DNA of 64,000 bases from positions 5,857,751-5,921,750 of the forward strand of contig OZ037773.1 of the NCBI GenBank assembly GCA_964035545.1, written 5' to 3'. Under the pieces are notes generated by a model. The model saw only the letters and a program-made list of their open reading frames with translations, did no database searches and was not told the origin of the DNA. The translations under genes and the position numbers were made by a program. This document shows, in pieces, positions 9,401 to 36,897 of the stretch (position 1 is the first letter of the stretch; the number at the start of each line of letters is the position of its first letter). This stretch comes from Bugula neritina (lineage: Eukaryota; Animalia; Bryozoa).

Positions 9401-12205
9401 ACACATCTACCAATAAATCAACTTCAGTAGGCAGAGTGATATGCTGAAATACCAGTTGCTGTTATGAATAATCAGAAGCTAAATATACTTCATATTCATG
9501 AGCTGTGATACAAACGACAAGCTATGACCTACCTTTGGGTAATTCATACTTACTATCTACAGCATTTTCTAGCATAAAGTTATTCTTCATATTCATAAAA
9601 AGTGATGTGAAAATCAAGAAAACTTGTATCATTAGAGTTTAGACTAGCCTAAATCTGTCCGCTAGAGATAAAGCAAACATAGCTGCAGGTAAGGTTTACA
9701 CTAGTTGTATGATTTGTGAGTAGCCTTCTGTGGTACATAATCCTGCATATTGAATATGTCTCTAATTTTAAATTATACAATACAATGCTCCCTCTTTATC
9801 GCACGGTTTCAGTTCTTACTAAACCCCATAGGTCACGAAAAGGACTTGGACTCCCGTTTTGTGGCTCATGTATGTGTAGCAAAATTGGAAGGGTTCATGA
9901 GTTAAATATAGTATTCTACTATGACGAAAATCCAGGTTTCAGAACCCAAAGTTTAGTGAGATATGAAGGGAGCACTATATTATGCATCACATTTAGTACA
10001 CAATATAAATTATTTACAAACAGAAGTAAAAAAATCAGAATATACATACTATGCAAAATAAATTAGAGTGCAGCTGAGGGTAGTAGTCAGTAATCCCAAC
10101 TTCCAAAACAGTAATGATCAATGTGATGTATTTAACATGGTTACCTACCACCACCATGATTGGCCTCACAACTTACGCAGTCAAAATATGCTACGTGACA
10201 TGACAGATACAATTCAGAAAGATGCGAAGATGCAATAAGCAGTGTTTGAAGTAGAGTGCAAAGCAAAGCCAAAAGCCATACCCACAGCAGAATATATATT
10301 AGCAATCTTGCAAATAAAAAGTTGATGACTTTTAAAGAAGCTAAATTTCAGGTCAAGCGTCTTTTTGTGACTTTATAAGTCACGAAAAAAGCAGAAGGTA
10401 AGCTGACTGAGCTAGAAAGCTGAAAGAAAAACCAATCATATATCCTCACAAACCTGAATGGTGAAGAGAACCCCGTGTTAAGTTCTCAGTTTCCAATAGC
10501 TATAATAAATAAGGTTCAGTAAAAAGTGCGATAGATATTTTTAGTTTGATTGGAAATATCATGAGCTCATACATAACCTGCAAAAATCTATGAATAGGAA
10601 TTATCTAGATTTGGAAGAGATGTCGAAGAGATAACTAACCTGAAAGTGGAGCAGGCCATTGGTCTTGGTTAATAAATGGCAAACCTATGCAAAAAGAAAG
10701 CACATAAATCTGCATTTAAAAATTTACAGTGTTATCGCAGCTGTATGGGAACAAACACACAATATTATTACAACTAATTTGAAGTGCACAAGTATCAACT
10801 ACTACTTCTGAATGACCTGTGACACTAAATTGTGTTGAAAAAAAACCGCTTTGGGTGATACATTGAAAACCTCTAGCAAATGAGAATGAAGCAATTCAGC
10901 CCATTTTCAATACTGAACTTTCGTTTTGGAGAATAAACAACTGGAATTTTAGCAATAGAAAACTGAAAATCCAATTTTTGCCAACCACTTTAAATCATTC
11001 TGAATATATTTACATTCCCTTTGTCACAACTTTGTAGAAATTTAAATGATAAGAATATAAAAAATGCATGTAAGATTTGCCATCTTGATAGGTTTTGTGT
11101 AAAAGAGTCTGCATATAGTTTCACAAAAATTGGGCAAATGGAGAAGTTGAATAAATTCTCTACACACATGACATCTTGCCAATAAAACGGATAATTAAAG
11201 ATTGATGTCATAAGTTATATAAAAAGTAACCCCAGTAATCTTCAGGGGGTAATGGGGGGGGGGGGGTGCTCTAAACACAACAGTGTCCCTACCACAATAA
11301 CCAATTACATTCAACAATCGAATATGTAAAATTGTTAACCAATAGGGTCAGCTTTGGGATGGTAAACAAAACTTAGAAGTCATTATTATCATTGCCAACA
11401 TTTAACTACACAGTTTCCCCAATGAGAGCAACAGGGGTCCAAGTCAAGCAAATTTGTGACTGAACTGAAGGGCTACTATCCCTCTATGATGTCCCCCTTT
11501 GGAATACATTACTTTAGATTCTAAGGTCACTGTTAGTATACTTTAGGATACTACGATGTGAAACTTTGATCACATTACATTACTTCTGTGCATGTTCTAC
11601 ATTTCATCCAAGATTATTGAATAATGGTAGCTGCTGAAACACAATATCACATCTAGAATAGGCAGCTGGTTTAAAGAAAAAAGGTTATGATGAATTAAAA
11701 TAATAAGACAAGCTGATGCAATATTTAGCTGATTTTTTCCAGCTGAAAATACCCACAACTACAATTTGCGGTATTTAATTAGTAAGCCTGCTAGGCAAAT
11801 AATCAGCACATTACCACTATTTGATCTTATTCATGAGCCACAAGCTATGACCTACCTTTAGTTAATTCATGTTCATTACTTCCTGTAGCATTCTTTATTA
11901 AAGATCCTTTCTTAAAAAATTCAACGACAACCTCTAAAATGGATGCAATACACTGAGTATCAAGTAGTCATATTGATCCTATTACACAGGATACAATACT
12001 TCTTATAAATATGGTGCATCAAGCGAGCAAACAAAAACAACTCAGCCACATACAAAATAAATAAAAAGCATTAATAGTGATGAGATGACTTACTGTTGTC
12101 TGAATTTTTTTCGGCAGGCGGAATATCGTTGCCATAATAAATAGTTGCAAGGGTGATGATTAGAAAGAACACCACAATTGAGGCCTTTCTAGTTAAAGCA
12201 GACAT
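6464..12205 (-). CDS. Carbohydrate sulfotransferase paralogue A. Exons: 12205-12094, mini-exons 11882-11856 and 9568(or 9556)-9533, 9406-9300, 8307-8114, 7985-7788, 7304-7147, 6702-6464
   Basis: Type II signal-anchor MSALTRKASIVVFFLIITLATIYY; 5'-PSB LPKTGSTN; 3'-PB FVRDPWQRLVSTY; HYRPQ; GKTET; DIEMFGY. Splice phases are consistent and give an open frame of about 352 aa. Confidence 0.88.
9782..9979. mobile_element. Tc1/mariner (pogo/Tigger-like) MITE in an intron of paralogue A
   Basis: Imperfect TIRs TACAATGCTCCCT ... AGGGAGCACTATA with TA flanks. Confidence 0.6.
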
Positions 12206-12639
12206 GGCTTAGATCACTCAGGTATACGCAACTTAAGCTCCTGGTGGTAGAGCCATTCTTTAAATCACCAAGCCAACTAGTCCAGTAAACTTGATGTAAA
12301 TTTCCACAATCCGAGGCTAGCAATCAATATAGATGTTTCAAGTGATGCCTCTTGCATGGTACGAACTAGAGACATAACACACTTTTTTGCAAATATTGAA
12401 TTTATGAGGCTCATGCAAAAATAACTTGATATCAATGTAAATTGCAAATGAGGCTGACACTAAATGTGAAGATCGAACTTTATTTCATCATACTACTTGA
12501 ACTGTTTCTAACTTTACTAGTCAACATTGAAACAAATGCATATGGTGAAGGTCTTTAATTATTTCTCAACTAACAAATTGAACAGGCGCTGCCAATTAAT
12601 AAATTGGAACTATAAGACTCACTATTATTACAAGTATTA

Positions 12640-12930
12640 TTAAAGAATCCCTGAGACACTTTACTTATGCAGTATTAAAATATGCATCTATATCTTAGCT
12701 ATCATCTGAATATCTTTTAAGGGTGGATGCCCAGGCAATTTTGTTTTATAACAAGTTTAGTGCATGAATGTCCTAAAAAGTTTCAAATTTCTGAGCTCTC
12801 AGTGATGACGTTTTCGGTCAGCTTCGAGTCCGAGTTATTATATAACTAATAGTTATTATTCCATACTTTCACAGTTTGTTATTTTTAGCCACTGCAACAC
12901 ACAGATCAATCAATGCACTGGCCTAAAATT
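12640..12930 (+). repeat. Interspersed repeat beginning TTAAAGAATCCCTGAGA; second copy at about 18592-18860
   Basis: Colinear similarity between the two loci (start motif, GGTGGATG/GTTGGATG, TTTTCGGTCAGCTT, TTAGCCRCTGCA). The TTAA start suggests a DNA transposon; family not determined. Confidence 0.55.
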
Positions 12931-13084
12931 TTAAGACACAGACTAAAAATAGTGCTGAATGAAAAAACAAATGAGACCATCTTACTATAGATCTTTAGAG
13001 CTAAAGTTACTTCCGTTTGAAATTTTGAGCATCGGAAAAATAAAATAGCCTCACTTCCAAGATGTAATTAGAACGGGTGGTTAT

Positions 13085-13578
13085 CAGGGTTAGGGTAATT
13101 GTAATTTTTAATTGGTTGTAATTAATTACATTTTTTCAAGTAATTGAATGTAATTCGTAATTGATGTATAAAAATGTAATTGTAATTGTAATTAATTACA
13201 TTGCTAATGCAATTGAATTTTACACTTACTTATAACTACATAACAACTACTTCGAATTTTTAAATCTTATAAAATTCTTATTTTTCCTGCTTTGTCTACC
13301 ATTTAATAAAAGGTTCAGATTAATTTAATCTCATATTTATGACACTACTCCTTACTACTGAGAACAAAAGAAAGTTTTCTGTTGTCAAAATTGCCCTGGG
13401 TAGCTGGACCCCAGAATTGTAATTGCAATTAATTACATTACCATGTAATTGCAATTAATTACATTACCATGTAATTGTGATTAATTACATTGATTTCAAC
13501 TGTAATTACAATTGTAATTGACAAATTATCATGTAATTGTAATTAATTAAATTCATATGTAATTGACCCCCAACCCTG
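13085..13578. mobile_element. hAT-superfamily MITE with TGTAAT/TAATTG subterminal repeats, copy 1
   Basis: TIRs CAGGGTTAGGG...CCCCAACCCTG; perfect 8-bp TSD GTGGTTAT (13077-13084 and 13579-13586). Confidence 0.9.
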
Positions 13579-15769
13579 GTGGTTATGTATATTTATAATT
13601 AATAATTAATTAAATTTTTATATTGAAACAAACTCATATTTTTTGCTATGACATAAACCAATCAACAAGAATTTTAAAATATTAGTTGTTAGCGCCATAT
13701 GTTATATCATAAAAGCAGAAATTCAGAGAAATCCGGGCTTACAAATAGAATACTAAATGCAATCATCGTGAATACAATTTTGACTTGAGTATGTAAGTGA
13801 TTAACTTATTTTGATAAGGATCGGTATAGCCACAATTACAACAAATAATGAATAACAAAATTCATCATCATTATCATTATGCATTTGATTTATGAAAAGA
13901 CAGTTCTTCCCTTGACTTAAAAGTTAAAATATCGAGGTAACACTAACTACAAATCAGTAATACTAATACTTGTATTGGTAGTAGTACTATTAGTATTGAT
14001 CAAATATTTAATTACTTGACTGAAATTTATAACTGTTAATGATTATAACGTTAACGGTTAAGTTTATTATTATAACTGAAAATAATCATTTAATCTTTTC
14101 TTTAGCATTGAATTTGATATCATGCTTGCTCAAAGGTTTTAATAGCTCATAAGCTTTATTAAGCCAGGATCAGTATGAGTATTGGCATTACAATTATAAT
14201 AATAAACATAAATTTAAATTATTAATAATGATAATACTATAATTATAAATCATACTGATACTGTAAGTGTAACTGTAAGACTAAGTGTATAAGTATAAAT
14301 ATTATTGTTGCTCGTCATTAATATCAAAATGCACGCCATGACTATTATCTCCATCTTGATACATGGACGGCTTAAATTGATAGCGCATTACTTCAGTAAT
14401 CTCAGTCAGAATGTGAGTGATTCTCATAGTCATAGTCATTCTGATTCATCATTGTGAATGTAATAGTAATACTGATTTTCATTTTACTCCAAGTATTTTT
14501 CGCCGGAGATAGATATGCTTACACTCATATTGATATAGTATAGGAACACTTTATACAATTAGAATTATTGTTACTTCTATATTAGTATATAATATATTAA
14601 GTTTATAACAATTACACTGCACAGACTCGGAGTCACGAGGTAAGTTGGAATATATTTATTGCTGCGAAAATTGTTTATGAAGCATAACATAAATTCCACA
14701 ACAGACGCTAAATGGGGCCTAGACAGCAGTCCGATACATCAAGAAATGTTGAAACTAAGGTTATATGCAACGGAAATATAGCCTATATGTATTTTCTGAA
14801 TGCGTTGCAGGCGGTATTTTTATCTACTTCTTGCTTTAGCGGTGCAATTTGTCACAGGCATGCGATAAAATTTTTTAAATCATTTTCAGACAAGTGTGCA
14901 CAAAATTTATTATAAAACAAAATTGTCAGGGCATGCAACCCCAAAGTGGTGTTCAGATGAATATTTGCATACTATATAAGTCTGTTCATCCATTACCTTT
15001 TTTGAGCCTATACTATGATTGATAATCTGTTTGCTATGGTATGACTAAATTGTGCAGACATTGTTTTTGTTGCCTCTATACTATCAATAGCTACACACAA
15101 TCCAAGCAGTTATTTGTTTTGTTTATTACAGTAACAAAGACCATACCGTATACAAGTACGTACAAGTACAAGTGCTGTATCGTGATTTATAAGTATGTGT
15201 CGTTGTCTTCTCTTGTTGTCACATATGTCTGGGGTGCACAACCCTGAGATATTGGATATAGCGTGGGTGTGGCTTGTGTTGGTGTTGTGGCTAGTGTAAA
15301 TGGGAGTATTGGAGATTGCAGACTGATTGAGAAACGATTGAGGATATTTGTATAGAATGTATGCGACCCAATTAGAATGTGTTAGGGTACGTTAGTGAGT
15401 GCTAGCTGAGGATCATAGACTGAGGAGCACCACCAGCCAACTACCCTAACCGGAGTCTCAACTTCACCCTTGCCAGACGGATGGGAGCTGGAGTTACCAT
15501 GCAGCCAAGCCATTAACCTGTAACTGTACACCGATCCCAAGCTCACGCAAAAGCTACAATCTATATAATATTATTCGGTGAGTTTACGATACTCCAAATT
15601 GTAAAAAACCTACCATAACAACTACTGCTTTATCCCACATATATTAAAATGTTTCTGAAACTTCAAACATAGTATTTTGAGAAGAACCGTACGCAGAAGA
15701 GATAGGAATGGAGACAAAATAAGTGAGATGTTGTTTAGAATCCTGAAGCCCCTGTGACGTAATTGGTTA

Positions 15770-16085
15770 ACGTATAAGAGAAGAGGCTAAAATAGAGGCG
15801 GTAACATTAGGAATGAGGAGGAGACGTCTTCAATGGTATGGACATGTACGCAGGAGAGATAGGAATGAAGATGTTATGATGGTGGATGAGATGAGGATAC
15901 AGGAAAATATAAAAAGAGGGAGGCCAAAGAAAAAGTGGATGGATACAGTGAAGGATGGCATGTTGAAATGGGACCTCTCAGATTATGATATTGCTGACAG
16001 TAACAGATAGCATTCTGCGATAGAACTTGGTGCCCTGCAGGACCACCACCCATCCCAGACCACGGTAAACTAGGTGAGAAGTTTC
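15770..16085 (+). mobile_element. 5'-truncated RTE-clade non-LTR retrotransposon 3' fragment
   Basis: Translation RRRRLQWYGHVRRR...KRGRPKKKWMDTVKD is the characteristic RTE C-terminal motif (RLxWxGHVxR / RGRP..W.D). Confidence 0.85.
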
Positions 16086-18285
16086 ACAAAAAACTTATAC
16101 TATCTTTACTGTCTTTATAGTAACAGCCACAGAACTTATCAGTGTATCAGTGCAAAGCTGAATTTTATTTGAAAGTTCAGACCACAAGTTGTTTCTCATT
16201 TCACTTGAGTTTTTGCTGGAGTTTGCTGCAAACAGTATGAAAGCTAAGCTTTCATATTTGGAAATTTTGCTTTGCAAATATTTTTACAAATAATTTTTAA
16301 TACCTTTGCTACTGCACCCATCTTTTTATTTGGTTACAGAAAACTATTTAATCAACACAAATTACTTATAATCAATAAAATCAAATTAGCGTTACACCAG
16401 CATGAAGTGAGGCAGGTAATATTCCTAAAATACACTACCTGTAGTGAAATTTATGTAAGATTTATAGTTGAGTTTTTAATTGCGACACTAAATGCATGCA
16501 GAGCTTTTGTAGACATAAGTTGCCTACAGCACAGTAGGTGCTTATAAGTTTAGAAACTCAGGCACTAGGCAATAGCCGGTGCTAGTCAACTGGTAATTGC
16601 TAGAGAGCAAACAAGTAAATTGTTGCAACATTTTATTTAATTACTGTTGTGGAATACAATTATTTATTTGTTTTAAAGGTTTGTGTTATGATTATGTAAA
16701 TTTTTTAATAATTGATTGTAGTTTTGAAAACTTCATCCAATGTAGTTATTAAACGATATAAAGTTCTATCAGTGTAGATTTAAACTTGCTAACAAGCCTA
16801 GTTCACTATATATACTATCAATACATTTTTTAAAATATTTGACAAAAAGTTTAAGGAGATATGTTATAGTCAACAGTTGAATGCTTTAATAATACCACAG
16901 AAATGCTAGACTGTTCATTTCCAGCTCTTTACTGAAATAAAAATTATGTGATTTGTTCTTGCAGTTGCTTAGCCTAAATGACAGCCTTTATCGAATTTCT
17001 CAAGAAGTTACATGGACATCTTCTTTTAGGAAATGATGCAAATTTAACTAGTTATTCTATTCTATTTTCTTGCAGCCTGGTATCTAAGGGAAAACAAAAC
17101 ACCCTAAGCAAATCACCCAGCACACCCATGTTATTTCACAATGTTTCATGATATAATTCGAAGTATTACATAACAAGTAGAAGTAATGAGATGGTAAAGG
17201 AATTGTTTATTGTTATCTATTCGTTTTTATTTAAATTCGCTTACAAGAATATTATACACTCTCCAGCTTCCTTGATCATTTAGTGTATTGGGCTATATTT
17301 TAGCTATGTCTTTTGTTAATTATTATTGACATTATGTAAGTATTCAACCTGCTTTTAATTTATAGTGCACTATATTATGCGTTGTAGGGTTTTAGATAAA
17401 AAATAAAATGAAAGTGAGTTTTATTAAAGCTGCACCTTGTATTTCAGGAATAAATAAACTTGATTAATAATCTAGGGAAAAAATATTTTGATTAACATAG
17501 TTTGTACCAAATCCATGCTACAGAAAAGTAATTATTAAAATATAAAAAAAACTTGAAGGTATTGTGACTATGAGGATTGTCCTCAAAATACTAGATAGCA
17601 ATACTTATCAAAAACTCCATTGATTGTTAAAATATGAACAAAAACATGACATGTTGAGTTAAAAGCTCCAATCATCCTCCTGAGCTAAGTTACTTAAAAA
17701 ATGAAATACAAAATAGAACATAGACTCCACCTGAAAAGTTTTAAAAATCAAAAACAGAGTTTGATTATCCAGATAAAATAGGTATTGGCACACATTTAGT
17801 CAGAATAATAAAAATTGGATAATAGTCATGTGATTGCATCCAACTACTATGTTGGTCTGTTACTTATTGATATATTGATTTATCGATTTATTTTGATTGC
17901 TTGATTTATAGAACTTATAGTGCCACCTCCCAAACTAGTAATATATAATTATTTACTGCATACTATTACTAAAATTACAGGTTTCCGTTGTTAAAATTGC
18001 ACAGGTGAACTGTATCATTAGTTTAATATAAAGATTTTCATTTTAATAATCTCAAAAAGAACCAAAATTCTATTCAAATGGAAACAGGTCATTTCATCCT
18101 AAATGAATTAAATCTTTCTAAAAGAGACAGGGATGGGCAATTGTGGTAGCAAACAGTTAATTATTAAAAAAATAACTATGTATATGTTGTATAAGCTGAA
18201 ACCTGTGGCTAGAGTGAGATTAAATTTAATCTCAAAATTTAATTTGATGCAGTTGCTATTTATTTCTGATGGAATTTCTCTGTAA

Positions 18286-18370
18286 GCCTAGGGCCACACG
18301 ACACGCGACACCTTTGCTACTTGTGATTTCAATTTTCGCATGCGGAAATACGCGCCGTGTGGCCCTAGGC
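18286..18370. mobile_element. Very short PIF/Harbinger-like MITE (85 bp)
   Basis: Perfect 15-bp TIR GCCTAGGGCCACACG/CGTGTGGCCCTAGGC flanked by TAA on both sides. Confidence 0.75.
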
Positions 18371-19053: not shown

Positions 19054-22000
19054 TCAGATTGGTTGTTCAGGGTAACCAAACATTTCAATGTCAACAGAAT
19101 ATATTTTTTGGAGCTTCATGATTGTCTGCTGATCTACTGACTTCCATCTGTCCAAGTAGGAAGAGAGTGTCATATTCTTCTTTTCATTTGGCCTGCGAAA
19201 CTGTTTAGCTTTTGTCATCATTGCTGACACATCTTTCACATTGTATTGCTGAAGGACCACCTTGATATCTTCCCTGTAAGTCTCTGTTTTTCCTACAAAA
19301 TTAGTCTAAATCAGAGCAGGGTTGAGGCTAAATTACATATGAATGTAATTAATTACAATTACATAAAAAATTTGTCAATTGCAATTATAATTACAGTTAA
19401 ACATCAATATAATTAATTACAGTTATAACAACATAGTAATGTAAATCAAAATTTTAACAAAATAAATACTTTTGCTCTGACAAGGGATAAATAGAAGAAA
19501 ACGCAATCTAACTTCTGGAGTCCAACTAACCGGGGCAATTTTGTTCTCAACAGTGATACAATACCTCAATGACTTAATCTGAAGATTTTACTAAACAGTA
19601 GGGAGGGTAGGAAAAGTATGAATTTTCGATTTAATACTATGAAGTAATGGACATGTAAATTTTATAAAATAATTGTTAAAATCAATTACATTAGATGCGT
19701 AATTAAATACAATTACATTTTTATACACCAATTACAAATTACATTCAATTGCTTGAAAATGTAATTAATTACAACCAATTACAATTACCCCAACCCTGAA
19801 TCAGAGGTACCAAATACAAGGCTATTTGGGAATGCTTTGTTTATTTATACATAAATATTTATTGGTGTTTAGCCACACCGACATAAAGTCTAATTTTATA
19901 TGACAGTTAATAATTATTTCATAGCAGTCTGATATCACTAAAACACAATACATGCACAGTATAGATACAACCAACTAACCTATAAAACTGTAGCTGAGAT
20001 CACAGAAAGCTCCACTGATACTTTGCGGACGGTAGTGAGGTTCCATTGCAATAGCACCGTTCTTTTCATACTGCTCTATTACACAATACTTCAAGAACTG
20101 AGAATAAGTCATTGTTTTATTTTCCTCCTTCAATTTCCTGAAACACAGAGATATTTAGAATAATTGATAGACTGATAAAGGTTGCAATTAAATCCTTCTA
20201 GAAAAGTAGGCAGTAAAAAGTGATTGAATAAACATTAAAAAATGTGCAACGATAGTAAACAACCTTCACAACCTGGATATTATATTTATTGCACATTTCT
20301 TGCATCTACAAGGTTTACAGTAGATATCTTGTTTGAAGAAACTAAAACAATGCAGTTTGCTAAGGTTTCACAAGAGTAATATTGGCAAGTTAAAATCTAA
20401 CACTATTACCAAGGTTACAATATTTTCAGTCAAGTCTGCTAGAAAACCATGCATTGGTCAGTTAATTGTGAAGTTCTCAGGCTTGTCACCACAAAAAAGG
20501 TTGAAAATTCACAATTGTTGTTGACTGGAGGTTTCAAGCAGAGCCACAGGTCAATCTATCCACCAGCTGCTCAGAGTTAGTGATATGACCTTGACATGAT
20601 GATGTTATGTCATGCTTGCCTGTTGAGGTTTACGAAATTGATGTTATTGCCATATTTGCACAGCATAATATACAAGTCAGAGAATAAGACTTTCTCAGTG
20701 TAGGTGCTGACTAGACGCTGCCAGGGATCTCTGACGAAGGTATAGAGGAACTTTCTGGTTGGCCAGTTGCTGGAATTTGGAGAGTACGATCCCAAATTCG
20801 GTGTTCTACTCATGAGGCTTTAAGTAAAACATAAAAGAGAAAGCATATATACAGATAACTAGGAATGATATAAACAGCAAGTAGCATACAAACTGGCTTG
20901 CTATTTATGATGATGGGTAACCGTTACAGATTTGTGAAGAATATAAAAATGTTCAATATTCTTATGTCTAATCTATGCATAAAATACTAAATGCTTATCT
21001 TAATGCAATAATGGTCAAATTTTAGATAAAACACAAAAGAAACAACATGATGGGATTATCTACCTTCTAAACCAGAAGTTACAGCACACATAACTCACCC
21101 AGGTACATAATGATGCTCATCAGGGTATCCTGTTATGTTGGTGCACTTTGGTCCAATCATGATGCACACCATTCGTAAAATATTTGTACTTCCTGTTTTG
21201 GGTATAAGTCCCCAAGACACATCACGGAATGTCAGGAAATACAGATAATCTGCTCTCTTATAATAACCTCTAAGGGATGTGTGATTCAAACAGTACTGCA
21301 ACAAGTTAACAACCCATAATGTTTACTGATACTTTTGCTGCTGATTGTACTGAATTCCTCATTTATTTTCCACCAAACAGTGTGAACGAGAGATGACATG
21401 GGGGAGACAAAAACTCACAGTTTTACACTGTAATCACAAATAAAGTGTGAAAAGTAATGAAGGGATAGAATGCTTGCAATAGGAGTTACCAAGAGAACAG
21501 TTACTTCTGCAGCTTAGAATAAGAAAATGCTTTCTACTGTTTGAGTTTCTAGGATGAAATAAAACATTGGCTTGAATTAACCAAATTCTGTTGGCAGAAA
21601 TATAGTAATTACTAACAATAAATTAACATAAAATAGTTGCAGCCTTGTGGTTGGTTATAGAAAGAAAGATTGAATGTTTTAGCAGGGAATTGTGCTCATT
21701 ATTCAAGTTCATAATTGCTTGCCAGTGATTTGCATGTATAATAAGACTGGGCGTAGCTGCATTCAATTACCTTTATAATTATTTTGAATTTGAATAAATA
21801 AGCAATTTGAAACTGCAGTGAATTCTGTCATATAATTATATTAAAATATATATGCACATTTCTATTTTACAAAGACATCCTTGTTTAAACTTTCTTTTCA
21901 CTTCAACATAACACAAAATAAAGCTATTACCTGGTTTACCAGAGAAATTCTCTCCACCTGAGTCTTCCTCACCTCTTCAAGGTCATACTGAGGTTCAGTC

Positions 22001-24350
22001 ACACTGTGCATCCATAGCAGGTTTTTGTTCAACACATCTACCAATAAATCAACTTCAGTAGGCAGAGTGACATGCTGAAATACCAGTTGCTTCTATGAAT
22101 AATCAGAAGCTAAATATACTTCATATTCATGAGCTGTGATACAAACCACAAGCTATGACCTACCTTTGGGTAATTCATACTTACTTTCTACAGCATCTTC
22201 TAGCATAGAATTATTCTCCATATTCATGTTTATGAGCTGTGATACAAACCACAAGCTATAAATTATCTTTAGTTAATTTATACTTACTTTCTACACCATT
22301 TTCTTATTCATATTCATAAACAGTGATGCAAAAATCAAGAAAACTGGTATCATTAGAATTTAGACTAGCCTAAATTTGTCAGATAGAGCTAAAGCCAAGA
22401 TAGCTGCAGCTAAGGTTTACTTATTAATTGTATGATATGCAACTGCATCTTTAATTTATATTATATTAGCCAGATTCACTAAAGGTAGAAGCAACTTGCT
22501 AACGCCTTATGTACACTTATTACCTGTTTCATTATTTACAAGTGAAAGGTGAAAAATCAGAATATTTGTACTTGGTAACATAAATCAGACTACAGCTAAG
22601 GTTAGCGATCAACAAGCCCAGCTCAGACAACAATAATGATTGGTGTGTGGCAGTTTGCACGATTACCTGCCACTTATTTAGTCTGTCCACAATTTAAGCT
22701 GTCGGAAGAGAGAAAACACAGAGAAAACACAGTGAAAACACAAACATATACAATAAGCAGTGATTGATACATTGTGCTGAGCAAAATCAAAAGCAATGTC
22801 CACAACTGAACATATATTAGCAGATGAAAAGTTGATGATTTTTAAAAAAGCTAAACTGCTGACCAGATGTGTAAGTCACGAAACAAAGCAAAAGGTAAGC
22901 TGACTGAGCTAGAAAGCTGAACGGAAAATCAATCACATATCCTCACAAACCTGAATGGTGAAGAGAACCATCGATAAGTTCTCGGTTTCCAATAGCTATA
23001 ATAAATAGGGTTCAGTAAAAAGTGTGATGGCTATTTTTATGTTGATTAGAAATATCATGAGCTTATACCTAACCACCTATTTTTATGTTGATTAAAATAT
23101 CGTAAATTTGAACTTGTAATTCAGTTCTACAGTGCTTACAACTTGACAAAGGGAGGATATCCTTTAGACGCAACCATTTCCCAACCACAATAATTATTTA
23201 CATTCAACAATAGTATATCTGAAATTGTTACTCTGTTTTTTGCATGATTGGACCAAACCCAAAGTTAATTATAGCCATCGCCATTCCATCTAATTACATA
23301 GTTTTGCCAATGGCACTTTCAGCCTGAAATTCAAAAGTGTCAAAGTTAAAATTTTGTGGTTAAACTGAAGGGCTACCCTCTAGTCTATGAGGTCCCCCTT
23401 TGGCAGACCGAGAAACCTGACGAATTACAGTAATTTAAATTCTAAGGTTACTGTTAGTATACTTTAGGATACTACAATGTGAAACTGATCACATTACATA
23501 ACTTCTGTGCATGTTCTACATTTCATACAAGATTATTGAATAATGGTAGCTGCTGAAACACAATACCACATCTAGAATAGGCAGCTGATTTAAAGAAAAA
23601 AGGTTAGGATGAATTAAAATAATAAGACAAGCTGATGCAATGTTTAGGTGACTTGCTCTAAAAAAACTCACAACTACAACTTGTGGTAGTTGTTTTGTAA
23701 CTTCACAGAACCAAAATCAAGTACCTTACTGTGATTCAACGTAATCCATGACTCACAAACTATGTCCTACCTTTAGTTCCTTCATGCTTGCCACTTTTTG
23801 TAGCATTTTCTGGTATAGAAATTTTCTTCACAACTTCAAAGCCAACTTCTAAAATACATGCAATAATGAGAAAAGCTGATACAATATTTAGCTGTAACTT
23901 TCGAATTATTGCCTTGAAAAAACTCACAACTACAACTTTTGGTAGTTACTTTAGAACTTCACAGAACTAAAATTCAATACATTACTGTGACATAACTTCA
24001 TCATGTCCAACAAACTATGACCTACTTTTGGCTGATTCATGTTTGATGCTCCTTGTAGCATTCCCTTGTATAGAATCTTTCTTCCAAACTTGAAAAACAA
24101 CCTCTAAAATTTATGCCACCAATGAGAAACTTATGATGCACTATTTTTTAAAAAAATGGTTGTAAAAATTAGGTAACAGAAACAACTCAGCTAAATAAAG
24201 AAAAAATACCAAGTAATTATAACAATAATGAAATAACTTACTGTTGCCTAAAGAATTTTTCACAGTCTGCAAATTTCCATAATAAATAGTTGCAAAGGTA
24301 ATGATTAGAAAAAACACCACAACTGATGCCTTTTTAGTTAAAGGGGACAT
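19054..24350 (-). CDS. Carbohydrate sulfotransferase paralogue B. Exons: 24350-24242, mini-exons 24064-24026, 23809-23771, (22995-22951 candidate), 22199(or 22187)-22164, 22037-21931, 21295-21099, 20817-20620, 20137-19980, 19292-19054
   Basis: Signal-anchor MSPLTKKASVVVFFLIITFATIYY; IPKTGSTN; FVRDPWQRLVSTY; HYRPQ. Same exon phases as A and near-identical exon sizes. Confidence 0.88.
19317..19798. mobile_element. hAT-superfamily MITE, copy 2 (opposite orientation to 13085-13578), in the last intron of paralogue B
   Basis: TIRs CAGGGTTG...CAACCCTG; perfect 8-bp TSD AATCAGAG. The empty site is visible in paralogue C at about 28795-28820. Confidence 0.9.
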
Positions 24351-24994
24351 GGCTTAAATCACTCAGGTAAAAGACTGAACTTAAAGCTCCCGGTGGTTAA
24401 AACATTCCATAAATCGCCAAACCAATTCCAACTCTTGACCTTTCCTATAACCATCCATAGTAAATTTGATCTAAAATTTCCACAATATGAGACTAACATA
24501 TAATACAGATGGTTCCAACAGATGCCTCTTGCATGGTGCTAACTAAAGATGTGGCATATTCCTTAATTATTTCTAAGTACTGAATCTATAAGGTTTATAC
24601 CAAACTCACCTTTCTAGCAAAACACCTGAACCTATCAAGATTATACAAAAGTAACTTGATATCAATTTAAATTGTAAATGTGACTGACAGTGAATGTGAA
24701 AATCAAATTATTGCTCATTCTATTACTTGAACTGATTTTAACATTATAATTATAATCTGAATGACTTTAGGCTCAGGCTTTGGTTTATTTATGGTTTATT
24801 TAAAATAGTAAGAACTACCAGTATATGTATGGCTATTTCACATTAGTTTTACTACAAGACAGAAGATTAGGATTCAAACTGATTTCACATTTAATACTAA
24901 ATTATTATGAAAATAAATAATAATATAATTAAACTACGAATCTTAATATTTATGCTAATACTAACAGAGTGAGAGTAACACTCATAGTAAATTA

Positions 24995-26898: not shown

Positions 26899-28543
26899 CT
26901 ACGAGAGCGTATAATGTTAATATAGCATATTATGTGAAAGATGGATATAGATGTCATTTCCAGGAATTAAGATAACGTCCTGCATCATAAAAAATATCAA
27001 TATGTGTCTATTTTTAATGTTTCAATTGTTATACACCACACACTATGTATGCAAATAGCATGAGATAATTGTAAGAGGATAAAAACATGTTAACTACAAG
27101 GCAATATTTAGTCATATATATATGAAAGTTGCAGGAAAGTTGAAAGCTACACATGTCATACATTACATATCAGTGTAGCACACAAAATATCAGCTATAAC
27201 ATAATGCATGGGTGCATCTATAGTAACCTATTACTATATTGTCATAGTGTGCATCACAATTATAAATTATATCATTATACTTCTTGTAGTGTTTACAATT
27301 TAGAAGAGGATAAAGTAACAGTGGGAGTTTGTTTTATTGCAATAAAATATTATATTTTGGCTGTACAACAATGCTAATGATATAACATAAACACAAAAAT
27401 TATCCTTTGATTAACAGAGTTTGTAGCAAATTATTTTCAAACTAACCGTTAAGGTAGTGTGATATTACGATTGTTCACAAAATATTAAAGCAATTTTGAA
27501 TAATAAAAGAATGCAAAATAGTAAAATTCAGCTGTGTTGATAGCACCAAAAGCCCATCAATACTATAATATATGAAAAAAACAAGAGATGTTGAGTTAAA
27601 AGAGTTAAAATTTAGAGTTAAAAGTTAAATGCAAAATAGAACATACAATATAGACTCTAACTAGAAAGTGTTATAACATTAAAAATGAAGTTTGATTATA
27701 CAGATAAAATAGGCATTGGCACACATTTAGTCAGAATAATAAAAATTGGATAATAGTCATGTGATTGCATTAACCTACTAAGTTGATCTTTTACTTATTG
27801 ATATATTTTAATTGACGGATTGATTTATAGAACTTTTAGTGCCAAAGTACAAACTAGTAATATAGAACTATATTGCAAACTTTCAATAAAATTACAGGTT
27901 TCCATTGTTCAATTTGCCCAAGTAAACTGTAGCATTAGATCAATATGAAGATTCCCATCTGAAGGATAACACAAAGCTAAAATTTACTAGACTGATTGAA
28001 ACGGATATTTTCAGACTATCTAATAAGAATAAGTCATTCTACCATGAATGAACAATGGGAATTAAAGATTTTTTGCTAAAAAAGATAAGGAAAAGTAATT
28101 GTGGTGACAAACGATTGAATATTTTAAACAATAACTTTAGGTTTCATAAGTGTAACTCCAGCCGTTGCTGTCTAGTGAATAAAATTTAGTAAAGTGAAGA
28201 GAGTGAAAATAACCACAGAGTACTAAAGTAACAACGCACACCTTATATGAAGTACTGCAAAATTCAAAGTACTGGTGTATTTGGAGTTGCTCTCTCAAGA
28301 AAGGTAACATTTGAATAGACAAAAGCATGGCGTGATTTGGTTTCGCATTTCCAACTCTGAATAAAAACTATTTCAACAACAGAAACTCTCAAGCCATCTC
28401 AGTGATTATGTAAACAAAGTAAATGCTTGATGCGGTTTTTACCTTCTAACCCTAAAGGAAGCTATTTGAACAAAGGAAACTAGGTGTATGTGGTTTACAA
28501 TGTAAGATATACACTCCCTACTAACTTCATTAGACCCATATCA

Positions 28544-31530
28544 TCAGATTGGTTGTTCAGGGTAACCAAACATTTCAATGTCAACAGAATATATTTTTTG
28601 GAGCTTCATGATTGTCTCCTGGTCTACTAACTTCCATCTGTCTAAGTAGGAAGAGAGTGTGATATTCTTCTTTTCATTTGGTCTGCGGAACTGTTTAGCT
28701 TTTGCCATCATTGCTGACACATCTTTCACATTGTATTGCTGAAGGACCACCTTGATATCTTCCCCGTAAGTCTCTGTTTTACCTGCAAATTATGTCTAAA
28801 TCCAGGGTACCAAATACAAGGCCATTTGGAAATGTTTCTTTTGTTTACACATGTACATTTATTGGTGTTTATACATTCACAGTATAGATACATAGATGTT
28901 TGTGGATGTTTAACCAACTAACCTATAAAACTGTAGCTGAGATCACAGAAAGCTCCACTGATACTTTGCGGGCGGTAGTGAGGTTCCATAGCAATAGCAC
29001 CTTTCTTTTCATACTGCTCTATTACGCAATACTTCAAGAACTGAGAATAAGTCATCGTTTTATTTTCCTTCTTCAATTTCCTGAAATACGCCATGGTTTA
29101 AAAATAGATACAAAATAGACAGACAGAAGCTGCCCTTCAAGTCCTCGAGAAGGGCAGGTAGTGTTTAAATTCAATAGCAAAAGTGGCTGAATACACATTA
29201 AAATAAATTACAACAAAGTTGGACACCCGGTGCTCCTTCTAAGGTCTAGACCAGGGCTGTCCAACTAGCGGCGCCAGGGCCGGATGCGGCCCCCCAGCCT
29301 ACATTTATGTGACCCTTTTGCAATAGATGCCATTTCTAAGAACAACAGCGCAAATCTACAGTTTTACAGGATTATTACTGTCAAGTTAAAATCTAACACT
29401 ATTACCATGGTTGCAACTTATTTTTAGTCAAGTCTGCTAGAAAACCATGTATTGGTCAGTTGATTGTGAAATTCTCAGGCTTTTCACCACAAAAAAAGTT
29501 GAATATTCACAATTGTTGTTGACTGGAGGTTTCAAACACAGCCACAGGTCAATCATCTACCTGCCACTCAGAGTTAGTGATATGACCTTGACATAATGAT
29601 ATTATGTCATGCTTGCCTATTAAAATTTACAAAATTGATGTTATTGCCATGTTTGCACAGCTTAATGTACAAGTCGGAGAAGAGGACTTTCTCAGTGTAG
29701 GTGCTGACTAGACGCTGCCAGGGGTCTCTGACGAAGGTATAGAGGAACTTTCTGGTTGGCCAGTTACTGTACCTTGGAGAGTAAGATTCCAAATCTTTTG
29801 TTTGCTTCATGAGGCTGGAAGTAACATATATAATAGAAAGTAGGTCATATGTCATAGCTGTTTACGAGAAATAGTAAATCATATGATGAGATTATCTACC
29901 TTTTAAACAAGAACCTGCACCACAAATAACTCACCCAGGTACATAATGGTGTTCATCAGGATATCCTGTTATTTTGGTGCACTTTGGTCCAATCATGATG
30001 CACACCATCCGTAAAATATTTGTAGTTCCTGTCTTGGGTATAAGTCCCCAAGACACATCACGGAATGTCAGGAAATACAGCCAACCTGCCCTCTTATAAT
30101 AACCTCCAGGGGATGTGTGATTCAAACAGTACTGCAACAAGTTATCAACTCATCACTTTTACTGATACTTTTGCTGCGGATTGTACTGAATTTCTCATTT
30201 ATTTTCCACCAAACAGTGTGAATAAGAGAGCTGGCATGGGGGAGACAAGAACTCACAGTTTTACACAGTAATCACAAATAAACTTACTCATCCATGAAAG
30301 TATGAAAACTAGGGGTTGGGATTTCAGTGGCTATATTTATATTCAGGGCATTTTAATTTTAAGAAGTCCTTCTTGTTTAGACTTTGTTTCTACTTCAACA
30401 TGACACAAGGTATTACCTGGTTGACCAGAGAAAGTCTTTCTACTTGAGTCTTCCTCACCTTTTCAAGGTCATACTGAGAGTCAGTCACACTCTGCATCCA
30501 TAGCAGGTTTTGTTCCAATACATCTACCAATAAATCAACTTCAGTAGGCAGAGTGACATGTTGAAATACCAGTTGCTGCTATGAATAATCAGAAGTTAAA
30601 TATACTTTATATTCATGAACTGTGATACAAACTATAAGCTATGACCTACCTTTGGGTAATTCATACTTACAGAAAAGTACTATGACTGCTATATGTAGGA
30701 TTTTTATCGTAGACTCAATTTTTAGTACAACACACCACTTGCTTTTGAAGGGAAAAACTAGACTGATGTATGCTTCATATTTCATAGTTATACCAGGACT
30801 GTTTTAAACTCTAGATCATTGGATAAGCTTTACTCAGTAATATAAATGTGAGGCATGTGAGTAAAAACATAGAATAGAAGTGAAAGTATATTAACACTAA
30901 ATTTGAATTGGGTATAGGAAATAGTAGTAGTTAGTTTCAAACACGTGTAAATTAGGTTAGTGAAAGTGGAAGTCAATGCAAGTTAATTATAGCCAATGGA
31001 AAAGCAGAAGGTAAGTTCACTGAGTTAACAAGCCGAGAGAAAAATCAACGGACACATCACAAACTTGAATGGTGAAGATAACCACCTGCGTTGGTTCATT
31101 TTTTCAGCTTTCAATAGCTATAATAAATAAGTGTAGTCACTGGCTGTAATTCAACAGAAATCTGTAGAAAATCTTGATCAAAGTGTTTTATATTTTAAAA
31201 TTTAGTGGGCTTAGGTTGGAAGAGCGGAGATGAAAGTAGGAGTAATCTGAGTGCCAAGTAGTAACTTTGGAGTCCGTCCAGTGAGATGCAATATATTAGT
31301 ATACATTCCTTCAAAAGGTGTAGGAAGAACTAAGGAGATCAAAGAAACTTAGAGTGAGGGGGTCAGCTACCTTTTACACCCACGTGCGGAAAAAAGCAGT
31401 TTGGACTAGAGAACTTACTGTAATTTCCGGAATTTAAGATGGGCCGAATATTTTGTCTAACATAGATTATTGTGCCAGTGATGATTAAAAAGAATGCCAA
31501 AACAGAGAGCTTTCTAATTGAAACAGCCAT
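28544..31530 (-). CDS. Carbohydrate sulfotransferase paralogue C. Exons: 31530-31419, (mini-exon 30679-30650 candidate), 30523-30417, 30131-29935, 29814-29617, 29080-28923, 28782-28544
   Basis: Signal-anchor MAVSIRKLSVLAFFLIITGTIIYV; IPKTGTTN; FVRDPWQRLVSTY; HYRPQ; conserved exon sizes 112/107/197/198/158/239. Confidence 0.88.
29218..29320. mobile_element. hAT/Charlie-like MITE termini fragments in an intron of paralogue C
   Basis: CAGGGCTGTCCAACT...GGGCCGGATGCGGCCCC preceded by a TCTAGA target-like site, with an opposing GTTGGACACCCG terminus just upstream. Confidence 0.55.
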
Positions 31531-32759
31531 AGCCTGGATCAAGCAGAAAAAAACTTCAAGTTTGAGACATTCTTCAAATCACCAAACTAATTAGCTCGCA
31601 GCTCCTCTCTTACACCTCCTGTATATCAAATCTAAAATGACAAATATCAGACTAGCAATAAACATCAAATAAATACTACTACTAGTAATATAAGTATTAC
31701 AAATACATTTTGATTTACTATTACCATCAGTAATACTATTATTACTAGGCTTAGTATTACTGCTTGGTTTATTGTAGTAATACTAAGTTTAATAGTAATA
31801 TTAATAGTAATTCATATTGAATTTGATAATCATAACCAGTATCATTATGATAATCACTTTATGATATTGATAATCAGCTTTAGTTTTGCACATTCATTTT
31901 TATTCTATAACTTATAAGTTATAAGTATGACTATGTGTAACTCAGTATGAGTATGAGTATCACTATCAGTATCAGTCATCAGATTTGTAGTATGAGCAAA
32001 ACTTAAATTATTGTCTATAAGTATAACTATAAGTACATTCACATTGAGTATTGACTTAAATTGAGTATCTACTACATTGGCATTCGCCTTCACAGTCACT
32101 CATATTGATAATGATAGTCACTATCATTATGACTATGATATTAATACACATACTGACTATTACTATCACTATGACACTGACAGTATCACTATCAGTATGA
32201 GTATGATAATTGATAATCATACTGATACTGATAGTGATACTCATAGTGTTAGCTATTAGTACTACTATTGCTATTAGTATTAGTATTACTATTATTATTA
32301 CTATTACTATTACTATTAGTATTACTATTAGCTAATAGTAATACTAATACTAATAGACTAATAAGTAATACTAATAGTAATAGTAATACTACTAATAGCA
32401 ATACTAATACTAATAGTAATACTAGTAATACTAATAGTATAAGTAATAGTAATAGTAATACTGTAATAGTAATACTAGTCTAGGACCAGTGTCTAATACT
32501 AATAGTATAACTATAGTAATACTAATACTAATACTAATAGTAATACTGTAATAGTAATACTAGTCTAGGACCAGTGTCTAATACTAATAGTATAGCTATA
32601 GTATAACTATAGGTATTAGTATAAGTATAGCTATTATTATTAACAATAACTATAACTAACTCCAAGTTACTGTTTAGGTAAATGCTTTATTATTTAAGTT
32701 TAACATTATTTATTACTTACAATTAATGAATTATGGTTACTGTTATATTAGGTTAGTTC

Positions 32760-33182
32760 TATATGCAGTAATCTGGCTCGACATCTAGTTTGATGGATAC
32801 TATCTGATTGGCTGTTTGATGCACGTGTTATTGTTGACGTCTGAGATAGTCACTGTGCCCCCAACTCAAAGTACACAGTATAATATATCGCTGCATACGC
32901 CTAAAGTGGCCATCATTGCAACCGTACTTAGTTCTGCTTCAGATTTCAAAGTTGTTTATTGCTTTAAGAGTATTATCAATTAAGTTATAGTAAGATGTTA
33001 TAGATGCTGTAATGACTTTATCATTATGATGATTGATTTGGAGAGCACGTGTACGCCATGACAGTCGAGGACATTAAAATAATCTCGTGCGCTTTTAATG
33101 AGTAAGCCAATCAGAGACGCTACCTAATCAGCCAATGAGAAAATATCCAGCTACTGGATGTCGAGCCAGATTACGGCATATA
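32760..33182. mobile_element. MITE-like element upstream of paralogue C carrying CCAAT and CACGTG motifs
   Basis: About 28-bp TIR TATATGCAGTAATCTGGCTCGACATCTAGT / ACTGGATGTCGAGCCAGATTACGGCATATA. Confidence 0.75.
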
Positions 33183-34083
33183 AAAACTTTCGTTATATTA
33201 TTTATATATTATATTATTTAAGGTTCATGTTTTAGTTGATTTAATTAGGTAGCCGTTACAAATGGCACTTCATTTCTCAGACTTTCGAAAAAGATAACAA
33301 TTCCGATAGGAATACATGCCTGACATAGTTTGTATAACAACCATTGACAGTTACTACTTATAAGTATAGTACGATGTATGATGATAATTATACGACACTT
33401 TCTTCGGCTGTTGCACTAAAAAAGTGGTTTAGGTATGACAACTCCAAAATAAAAATATATTTATGCAACTCTTCGTCATAAATGTAATGTATGTATAGCA
33501 ACATGTATATCTGACATTATATTATTTAGAAAAGACGATATAGCTTAATAGGTCGTTGCCTCAACACACTCATTCCATACGCATCTCAATGTAAAGGTTG
33601 CATGGGGTATTTAAATGCTAGAGAAGGGCTTCTGGATTGGCGGTTCTGTACCAAAGAGTTGACCTCTTAGGCCCTAGCATGTTTCTGTTTTGTATAATCT
33701 TTAGTTTTTGAAGATTCTTTTTACGTCTGAAGCATAGACAAAGAAACTGCATATATAGCATAGTTAATAGTTGTTCAGACCATAAATGCACTCATCAAAC
33801 TTCTTGCTTTGTTTGTATTCTCTCCTGAGTCAGCCTTCTGCTTGTTTTGAAAAATATAGGTTTGTCAGTCATTTCCGTGTCTGTACATGTCACATTTTCA
33901 ATAAATTAGTAAGCTCAGATTGTGCCTGATCAAACAAATACAATTTTAATATAGAGTAAAAAGCAATAATTTCATTAACGGACAACAGTGATACTACTAT
34001 ACAACCAAACGTGTATGTAATCTTGGCTCAAAGGATGTAAAATATGCACCTATCAACTAACTAACTTTATTAGAACCAAATTA

Positions 34084-36897
34084 TCAATATGGCTGCTGAC
34101 TGTAACCAAACATTTCAATGTCAACAGAATATATTTTTTGGAGCTTCATGATTGTCTCCTGATCTACTGACTTCCATCTGTCCAAGTAGAAAGAGAGTGT
34201 CATATTCTTCTTCTCATTTGGTCTGCGAAACTGTTTAGCTTTTGCCATCATTGCTGACACATCTTTCACATTGTATTGCTGGAGGACCACTTTGATATCT
34301 TCCCCATAAGTTTCTGTTTTACCTGCAAAATTGGTCAGAATCAACCAGAGATGCTAAGCATTTTTATGCAGCATTATAACATTTAAGTGCTTACTGCGGT
34401 CACAATTCACAAGCAAACATTTTTTTGGTTTTTACACCAAAATTACTTTAAGGAAAACAACAAGACTTATATCAAAGAAGCATGTTATAATTCTCAATCA
34501 TGGACAAATATGTAGACATTCTGCTTCATCACCATCAAAATTACCTAACACACTGGCTGATTAACTTTGGGACATACAAGCATACTAAAAGACCTAACAA
34601 CTCGCTTTGATGCTTGGAACATAGCTGTATTAAACAGTGGATCATAGAGATTTACAATAAAACCTATTTTTATACTTGCAAACAGGAAACGTGGTACAAT
34701 TTGTAATTCTTTCTTAGCAGTCAATCATTTATTACCAGACTAATATCACTAAAACACAATACATGGACAGTATAGATACACAAAAGCTGTGGATGAACAA
34801 CTCACTAACCTATGAAGCTGTAGCTGAGATCACAAAAAGCTCCACTGATACTTTGCGGGCGGTAGTGAGGTTCCATAGCAATAGCACCGTTCTTTTCATA
34901 CTGCTCTATTACGCAATACTTCAAGAACTGAGAATAAGTCAATGTTTTGTGTCTCTGCCTCAGCTTCCTTAAACACGCACAACATGCTTTACAAAATAGG
35001 TTTGACATACACCCATTTTCTTATGGATTGATCTCAGTTCCATTCACAAAGAATATCAAAGATTGATTTCATTTGATCTGAGATAATAGTTCCTATCGCA
35101 AGTTTAATTGGCCAAGAAAATATATGTCAGATCGATTCAATCTGAAAACTTTTTATGCTAAATAAATTAACAATAGCAAGACTACCAATAGGTAAAAAAA
35201 CAGACTAGATATGCTACTTATATATTTTTCAAACTGACATTGGTCAAAGTGATGATATATTAAAAAACGAGTTGCATTGAACACACTACTGGTCACGATA
35301 AAAATCAAATCAAATTATAGAAATTCAGTGATAACAAATAAAAACTGCACTTAAGTCCAATTTTGAAGACCAAATAGTGTTTAAATTTACATGCAAAAAG
35401 GGTTTTATATACAGTCTCATTATCTAGTACCTTAACCTAATGTGTCATGCTTGCCTGTGGAGTTGTAAAAACTTATAGTTTGCACCGTATTCACAGATCA
35501 TAATATACAAGTCGGAGAATAAGACTTTCTCAGTGTAGGTGCTGACTAGACGCTGCCAGGGATCTCTGACGAAGATATAGAGGAACTTTCTGGTTGGCCA
35601 GTTGCTGTATCCTGGAGAGTAAGAATCGAAATCTTGCATTTTTTTCATTAAACTGTAAATTTGACATAATAGAGTAAGTGACATACAGGCAGCAGCTTAT
35701 TAATTGTAACTTTTTTATACATTATGAACATACTACTTTTTTCAAGTTTTGCCAACCACAGTTTCAAGTTTTTGTTAATTTTAAATTTTTTTATAATTTA
35801 CTGTTTTTATATTTAATTCTAGATTTGCAAATTTTCAAAAAGCATATAAGATCTCAAAATTTCCAAGTGTTAGCCCATGCATATACTAAATATAATACTA
35901 ATGCATATATTTCTAACAACAATCAACTTAATAATAATAGAACACAGATGTAGTAAAATTACGTAACGATTCTAGTCCAAACATGCGCCACAAATAACTC
36001 ACCCAGGTACATAATGATGCTCATCAGGATATCCTGTTATGTTGGTACACTTTGGTCCAATCATGATGCACACCATCCGTAAAATATTTGTACTTCCTGT
36101 CTTGGGTATAAGTCCCCAAGACACATCACGGAATGTTAGGAAATACAGCCAACCTGCTCTCCTATAATAACCTCCAGGGGATGTGTGATTCAAACAGTAC
36201 TGCAACAAGTTAACAACTCATCACTTTTACTGATACTTTTGCTACTGACTTTGTTTCCAGTTCAACATAACACAAGGTAAAGCTATTACCTGGTTTACCA
36301 GAGAAAGTCTTTCCACTTGAGTCTCTCTCACCTCTTGAAGGTCATACTGAAGGTCAGTCACATTCTGCATCCATAGCAGGTTTTTGTTCAACACATCTAC
36401 CAATAAATCAACTTCAGTAGATAGAGTGACATGCTGAAATACCAGTTGCTGCTATGAATAATCAGAAGCTAAATATACTTCATATTTATGAGCTGTGATG
36501 CAAACCACAATTGCTATGACTTACCTTTAGTTAATTCATGTTTGTCCCTTTCTATAGTATTTTCTCTTATGAACCTATTCTTCAAAACTTCAAAGGCAAA
36601 CTCTAAAATTTATCAAGTGAGCTGGATGTTAAGCGGTAGTAACTTTTTCCATGACATGTAAGGCAATATATTGATTATATTTTTTAAAAAGGTTTATAAA
36701 AAAGGCCTTAAAAATCAACAAGGAGTAATATTTTCACATTAATTGTGCAAATACATATTTAAAAAATAATCAATAGAGAACTTACTGTTGCTTAAAGGGT
36801 TTTCCACAGGCTGAATGTTTTTTTCAAAATAAATGATCTTGCAAGTGATGATCAAAAAGCACACTACAACTGATGCCTTTTTAGCAAAGGCAGCCAT
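34084..36897 (-). CDS. Carbohydrate sulfotransferase paralogue D. Exons: 36897-36786, mini-exon 36551(or 36563)-36525, 36396-36290, 36199-36003, 35652-35455, 34967-34810, 34322-34084
   Basis: Signal-anchor MAAFAKKASVVVCFLIITCKIIYF; IPKTGSTN; FVRDPWQRLVSTY; HYRPQ; conserved exon sizes and phases. Confidence 0.88.

Follow-up and report, generated by a model that had tools for sequence, protein, structure and literature searches.

Locus and gene models

The window analysed here, a 64,000-nucleotide (nt) stretch of the bryozoan Bugula neritina (GCA_964035545.1, contig OZ037773.1, referred to below as contig 9, positions 5,857,751 to 5,921,750) from a Darwin Tree of Life assembly (PMC11480708), carries on its minus strand four paralogous Sulfotransfer_2 genes, A-D. 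The subject of this report is the part of these genes that lies between the membrane-anchor exon and the KNLLWM exon and encodes the predicted stem, where a candidate 78-nt exon has probably been duplicated and lost to different extents. Together with a further Sulfotransfer_2 gene on the plus strand of the window (paralogue E), A-D belong to a tandem array that numbers at least eight copies within ~80 kb. According to PMC11480708, the gene annotation of this assembly (Ensembl Rapid Release) rests mostly on transcriptomic data.

6464-12205, minus strand: paralogue A, Sulfotransfer_2 gene
19054-24350, minus strand: paralogue B, Sulfotransfer_2 gene
28544-31530, minus strand: paralogue C, Sulfotransfer_2 gene
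34084-36897, minus strand: paralogue D, Sulfotransfer_2 gene
12094-12205, minus strand: A exon 1, ATG at 12205, signal anchor, ends in phase 1, donor GTAAGT
24242-24350, minus strand: B exon 1, 109 nt, ends in phase 1
31419-31530, minus strand: C exon 1, 112 nt, ends in phase 1
36786-36897, minus strand: D exon 1
9300-9406, minus strand: A KNLLWM exon (E3), 107 nt, phase 1 to 0
21931-22037, minus strand: B KNLLWM exon (E3)
30417-30523, minus strand: C EQNLLWM exon (E3)
36290-36396, minus strand: D KNLLWM exon (E3)

The exons of A-D are mutually ~90% identical, and the plus-strand subfamily is ~50% identical to them at the protein level. With exons run singly rather than as a spliced protein, the PF03567 (Sulfotransfer_2) profile matches E5 at 26.0 bits and E7 at 26.6 bits (cut-off 22). 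E4 contains PKTGST (PKTGTT in C), a 5'-phosphosulfate-type motif for 3'-phosphoadenosine 5'-phosphosulfate (PAPS), E5 contains the RDPxxR-like 3'-phosphate-binding (3'-PB) motif RDPWQRLVS, and a hydrophobic stretch of ~16-18 residues is visible at the N-terminus encoded by exon 1. A-D are intact tandem seven-exon genes for predicted type II Golgi enzymes of the Sulfotransfer_2 family; in D, the seven exons, with the 78-nt exon included, join into a single open frame of 362 codons.

E1 of D: 112 nt, phase 0 to 1
E2 of D: 78 nt, phase 1 to 1
E3 of D: 107 nt, phase 1 to 0
E4 of D: 197 nt, phase 0 to 2
E5 of D: 198 nt, phase 2 to 2
E6 of D: 158 nt, phase 2 to 1
E7 of D: 239 nt, phase 1 to end

A sequence-only reading of this locus had proposed that short, alternatively spliced cassettes vary the stem while the catalytic exons stay essentially fixed in size. 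The second half of this proposal holds, as E3-E7 measure 107, 197, 198, 158 and 239 nt in all four genes, bar a 3-nt deletion in the E4 of A (194 nt). The framing exons were also described correctly: exon 1 of each of the four genes ends in phase 1, and the KNLLWM exon begins in phase 1 at ...ttattggtag/AT, an acceptor that has a phase-1 equivalent at E3 of paralogue E. A more consensus-like tttcag located 38 nt upstream was discarded as the acceptor of the KNLLWM exon, being out of frame with exon 1 (stop) and, moreover, mutated to tttcaa in both C and its orthologue. The intron after E5 apparently is of the GC-AG type in A-D (donor AG/GCAAGC at 7786-7787, 20618-20619, 29615-29616 and 35453-35454, minus strand); read-through meets an immediate stop, and the phase of the next exon fits only with the GC donor.

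Homologous units in the first introns

The proposed cassettes, minus-strand units of 24-39 nt bounded by AG and GTAGG or GTAAG, are present in the DNA at 11856-11882 and 9533-9568 in A, at 24026-24064, 23771-23809, 22164-22199 and, with a GT>AT change at the donor, 22267-22302 in B, at 30650-30679 in C and at 36525-36551/36563 in D; all have lengths that are multiples of three and an open phase-1 frame. Several of them have two in-frame acceptors 12 nt apart, as had been noted, but the upstream unit of A (A1) lacks a second one. The tandem intronic duplication proposed for B is likewise recovered by Tandem Repeats Finder (TRF) as a 255-nt repeat of 1.8 copies with 78% matches:

23661-24129, minus strand: tandem duplication in B carrying the units B1 and B2, 255 nt, identified by TRF and spanned by a contig

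That contig derives from an Illumina-like run, the only one that a run search returned, which, over 21900-24700, covers the introns evenly and has no exon joints, and hence represents genomic DNA; its contigs span both duplications found in B, upholding the assembly there. In the same run, word depth climbs from ~125 to 380-450 over 21994-22181 (the KNLLWM exon plus the intron upstream of it), a rise that fits near-identical words common to the paralogues.

The bare AG...GT pattern is commonplace, matching 29 times on the minus and 27 times on the plus strand of the window (~0.2 unrelated matches per kb), and is by itself no evidence. What goes beyond chance is that all eight units align with each other, flanks included, and are thus homologous, and that genome-wide DNA searches (216.0-Mb genome) find them only in A-D. 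A dispersed repeat was therefore rejected, as was a known RNA, since no Rfam family matches the units. As judged from these alignments, the units are descendants of one putative ancestral exon plus its flanks and not a mobile repeat.

A constant 78-nt boundary

In A1, B1, B2 and the unit of D, the phase-1 frame continues open beyond the proposed acceptors up to an invariant ATTTTAG located 39-51 nt further 5', which gives exactly 78 nt in each case; C has no such exon. The ATTTTAG site resembles acceptors placed with confidence in these genes (ttgttgcag, atttacag, attttgcag), and the predicted peptide begins with a short hydrophobic/basic stretch and then becomes hydrophilic, usually with an N-A-T sequon.

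11856-11933, minus strand: A1, candidate 78-nt stem exon of A, phase 1-1, ATTTTAG acceptor, GTAGGT donor, N-A-T sequon; the 27-nt unit described earlier is its 3' part
24026-24103, minus strand: B1, first candidate 78-nt stem exon copy of B, N-A-T sequon
23771-23848, minus strand: B2, second copy of B, N-A-T sequon; frame, donor and sequon retained in the B orthologue (L010)
36525-36602, minus strand: single candidate 78-nt stem exon of D, 128 nt upstream of E3

By contrast, the 5' limits first given to the upstream units are at non-homologous positions: by our reading of the alignment, the site that gives 39 nt in B1 and B2 would give 37 nt in A1, and the one that gives A1 its 27 nt would leave B1 with 26 nt and B2 with 23 nt. 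The mini-exons of 27-39 nt more likely represent the 3' portions of a single, constant 78-nt exon whose ATTTTAG acceptor is conserved.

Sibling-species orthologues

Contigs orthologous to this locus were reached via fragment proteins in the 2020 draft genome GCA_010799875.2 and two Joint Genome Institute (JGI) Bugula metagenomes. They are collinear with the window yet only 76-90% identical to it outside exons, and so come from another, diverged member within the B. neritina complex, referred to here as the sibling species. Orthologues were assigned as follows, so that A-D are older than the split between the two species.

D: L009
B: L010
C: L001 and L006
F (a paralogue upstream): L007 and L008

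In the D orthologue the unit is again 78 nt long, with ATTTTAG, GTAGGT and an open frame, while the B orthologue begins inside the 78-nt unit and keeps the frame, the donor and the N-A-T sequon. Three independent metagenome contigs of the sibling species (L001, L006 and L010) break at position 1 exactly inside a cassette, as expected if cassettes were repeated there too. Scans of a metagenome collection with the KNLLWM open reading frame (ORF) and a 22-base invariant intron pattern gave no match, the pattern scan missing even L001, an expected match.

Evidence that the 78-nt unit is coding

The coding status of the unit was assessed on six copies: A1, B1, B2, D and the orthologues of D (L009) and B (L010, partial). 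None of the six contains a stop in the phase-1 frame, compared to 22 and 12 stops in the other two frames, and in a neutral simulation starting from the open consensus all five full copies stay open with P = 0.025. Moreover, not a single indel separates the units in any comparison, despite ~70 substitutions on the tree; 9-17 would be expected (P below about 1e-3), given 0.12-0.3 gap openings per mismatch in flanking introns (5/40 for the D orthologues, 26/85 for the B orthologues and 8/44 for A1 against B2). At the splice sites, the donor GT is intact in 6/6 copies and ATTTTAG in all five acceptors covered, L010 beginning inside the unit. Finally, exon 1 and the 78-nt unit, the latter extended by 7-18 nt of flank, are the sole alignable islands 5' of E3 in blastn comparisons of A, B1 and B2 with D; among paralogues the unit is 0.71-0.79 identical in a nearly gap-free alignment, against 0.56-0.63 for intron 1a, whose length varies between 138 and 183 nt. 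Frame, length and splice sites of the 78-nt unit are under constraint.

Comparison with the flanking intron, which had been suggested as a check, comes out in favour of the unit as regards indels and identity among paralogues, but not as regards identity among orthologues, and this is one of several points that weigh against a coding exon. Between the D orthologues the unit is 82% identical, slightly below the introns, and its ratio of non-synonymous to synonymous substitution rates (dN/dS) is 0.79, compared to 0.12 for E1, 0.38 for E3 and 0.5 for E5; among paralogues the ratio is 0.5-1.7. The peptide thus shows no purifying selection. The relatedness of the copies leaves few independent lineages behind the statistical tests, and the number of indels per mismatch varies with the aligner used. 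Skipping the unit also keeps the frame, so that nothing forces its inclusion, and the 48-nt candidate of the plus-strand paralogue F described below is altered in the sibling species (acceptor -1, donor +4), which changes the peptide frame. Protein libraries queried with the last exon, E4, the exon-1 ORF and the KNLLWM ORF yielded no transcript-derived protein and returned exon-sized genomic fragments or nothing, although a length filter may miss full-length models.

At about 1, dN/dS was set aside as a coding test, being compatible with an unconstrained linker but lending the exon no support. Taken together, the comparisons point to a real coding exon that would evolve fast (dN/dS about 0.8-1), and we read this as a predicted stem segment of unconstrained sequence. 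Inclusion of the unit in the mRNA, and a functional consequence of stem length, we infer.

Downstream 36-nt units

A second class of units (type 2), located closer to the KNLLWM exon, aligns with the 3' two-thirds of the 78-nt unit and reads ATTTTCAC at the position of ATTTTAG.

9533-9568, minus strand: A2, 36-nt unit of A; AG, GT and frame intact, weak acceptor; exon or relic
22267-22302, minus strand: B3, 36-nt unit of B; pseudo-exon with GT>AT and three changes at +4, +5 and +7
22164-22199, minus strand: B4, 36-nt unit of B; intact, sibling-species counterpart broken
30650-30688, minus strand: truncated type 2 relic of C, homologous in the 3' 20 nt and donor only
B orthologue of the sibling species: a single type 2 unit, which has lost 4 nt and its donor (GT>CT), with a further 18 nt deleted immediately downstream

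In the C orthologue an extra T makes all candidate lengths (31, 37 or 16 nt) frame-breaking; the cassette with a rebuilt acceptor attributed to C is thus 31 nt long there, not a multiple of three, and is not supported as described. Overall, 4/6 type 2 units are broken, compared to 0/6 of the 78-nt units, with the donor lost in 2/6, and the loss of 4 nt, the gain of 1 nt and a truncation show that frame and length are not preserved. The downstream units hence mostly behave like decaying relics; to judge from these lesions, the 36-nt units are probably pseudo-exons left by an old duplication, while A2 and B4 are possibly still spliced in.

Alternative explanations

Three other explanations can be set against a duplicated 78-nt exon. 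That all units of 24-39 nt, as originally bounded, are real alternatively spliced cassettes that tune stem length agrees with their AG/GT bounds, lengths that are multiples of three and open phase-1 frame, with strong donors (AAG/GTAGGT) and with the second in-frame AG found 12 nt away in several units. It is nevertheless improbable, as the 5' boundaries are at non-homologous positions and, copy by copy, the only AG kept was one that happened to be in frame; by our alignment reading, the 27-nt acceptor of D delimits 26 nt in the sibling species. The in-frame, indel-free block, furthermore, reaches 78 nt and has a better, invariant acceptor, and four of the six type 2 copies are broken.

If instead no unit were an exon, all would be intronic relics of old duplications and exon 1 would join the KNLLWM exon directly, a junction that is in frame in 4/4 genes and with which C manages without an intact unit. 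A dN/dS of about 1 agrees with this, and paralogue introns are widely conserved, so that conservation alone says little; yet six copies that have neither a stop, an indel nor a lost splice site at 18-28% divergence are not what a neutral intron would be expected to leave, and the type 2 copies within the same introns do decay, showing what neutrality looks like here. We consider this explanation unlikely, if less so than the cassettes as first bounded. Constraint at the RNA or DNA level, for example on an intronic regulatory element, would account for the observation that the most invariant parts of the block are its splice-site-like ends and ~15 nt past the donor; such an element would, however, neither avoid stops in one frame only nor forbid indels while a quarter of the bases change, and no Rfam family matches at the 78-nt block, so that a non-coding explanation appears very remote. 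All considered, the account we favour, and hold to be somewhat probable, is a 78-nt phase 1-1 exon between the anchor and KNLLWM exons, duplication and loss of which have left no copy in C, one each in A and D and two in B.

Probable history of the candidate exon and predicted stem length

Under this favoured account, B would owe its two copies to the 255-nt tandem duplication of the upstream copy, and its downstream copy would also have duplicated (about 103 nt), B3 and B4 being ~103 nt apart, whereas C would have lost the upstream copy. The type 2 units of A, B and C would go back to an older duplication that placed a further copy, shortened at its 5' end, immediately before the KNLLWM exon; having lost the original acceptor, these truncated copies would then mostly have decayed. 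In D, the 78-nt exon lies directly upstream of E3 and is followed by the intron that in A-C lies downstream of the type 2 units. Either D keeps an ancestral single-exon layout and the exon was duplicated in the lineage of A, B and C, or D would have been formed by deletion between two copies; the former is mildly favoured by a 45-nt candidate in the plus-strand paralogue G, which is found at equal distance from the KNLL exon.

Because of the differences in copy number, the predicted stems differ in steps of 26 residues:

C: no 78-nt module, no N-A-T sequon
A: one 78-nt module, one N-A-T sequon
D: one 78-nt module, no N-A-T sequon (lost in D and its orthologue)
B: two 78-nt modules, two N-A-T sequons

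The suggestion that symmetric modules set stem length is thereby supported in that they preserve the frame, are duplicated and differ in number between paralogues next to a fixed catalytic core, but not as regards the size of the module and the status of the small units. A bolder possibility is that the 26-residue module acts as a copy-number-variable molecular ruler which, together with optional 36-nt relics or internal acceptors, sets the reach or Golgi residence of each paralogue, under diversifying rather than merely relaxed selection. Between sibling species 10/25 residues differ in the module, compared to 3/37 in exon 1; we nonetheless regard a ruler as a long shot.

If the 78-nt exons are spliced in, the locus shows exon duplication, truncation and decay reshaping the stem of a type II Golgi enzyme beside fixed catalytic exons, and its 0, 1, 1 and 2 copies, with pseudo-exons at several stages of decay, amount to a small natural experiment on stem length. 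It also carries a caution for annotation: in-frame AG...GT pairs chosen copy by copy yield plausible but non-homologous micro-exons, whereas setting the paralogues and orthologues side by side led to another boundary, one that stays constant.

Comparison with known systems

A-D, which may belong to the HNK-1ST / CHST8-14-like group of Sulfotransfer_2 carbohydrate sulfotransferases, resemble members of this family in the PF03567 matches on E5 and E7, the PKTGST and RDPWxRLVS motifs and a hydrophobic N-terminal anchor followed by a stem (predicted type II Golgi topology); unlike them, they are part of a lineage-specific tandem array with eight or more copies. Large protein libraries yielded exon fragments but no full-length relative of A-D. 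The coding regions of vertebrate CHST genes are mostly single-exon, in contrast to the seven coding exons of A-D.

Tandem duplication of symmetric (phase 1-1) exons is a well-described route to protein elongation and alternative exons. The present case shares with it adjacent homologous copies of equal phase and length, duplicated with flanks in a 255-nt unit, as well as copies that appear to be degenerating into pseudo-exons; it departs from typical exon duplication in that the unit would encode unstructured stem rather than a domain, and in that recent paralogues differ in copy number (0/1/1/2). Golgi glycosyltransferases and sulfotransferases can have isoforms that differ in the stem region, and in A-D, too, variation is confined between the transmembrane anchor and the catalytic domain; here, by contrast, it is found between gene copies and fixed in the DNA, splice isoforms being hypothetical. 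A literature search combining stem region, sulfotransferase and alternative splicing returned nothing relevant. The case would be an ordinary one of exon duplication and loss, involving a symmetric exon in a lineage-specific gene cluster.

Plus-strand subfamily and neighbouring features

Two plus-strand paralogues have phase 1-1 candidates of their own; each is well flanked and sits after a signal-anchor exon and before a KNLL exon, both in phase 1. That of F is 48 nt long and has good splice sites (contig 9: 5839519-5839566; L002 8520-8567), and that of G is 45 nt long and lies 135 nt upstream of the KNLL exon (contig 9: 5848683-5848727). F was rejected as outgroup support for the 78-nt exon, its candidate not being frame-conserved between sibling species; the start codon of F is ATA in the sibling species.

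The tail of a further plus-strand copy occupies positions 1-784 of the window, and more copies lie upstream of the window. In the copy ending at 548-784, E4-E7 are seen, and a search of the 2 kb that precede its E4 (region: contig 9, 5854600-5857750) gave no exon of the KNLL type; this copy may be 5'-truncated. Upstream of E, three 82-nt tandem repeats (39175-39429, plus strand) each contain a 33-nt cag/.../gtatgt unit, and the ORF starting just before them has no hydrophobic anchor and may not be exon 1 of E.

Three other features were seen in the window:

42728-47734, minus strand: 1668-codon retroelement ORF (gag, protease, integrase-like) within an intron of E
1829-3100, minus strand: intronless 423-codon ORF for a GFO/IDH/MocA oxidoreductase (PF01408, PF02894), located between sulfotransferase genes in intron-rich surroundings
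60842-60913, minus strand: single tRNA gene (Rfam, 37 bits)

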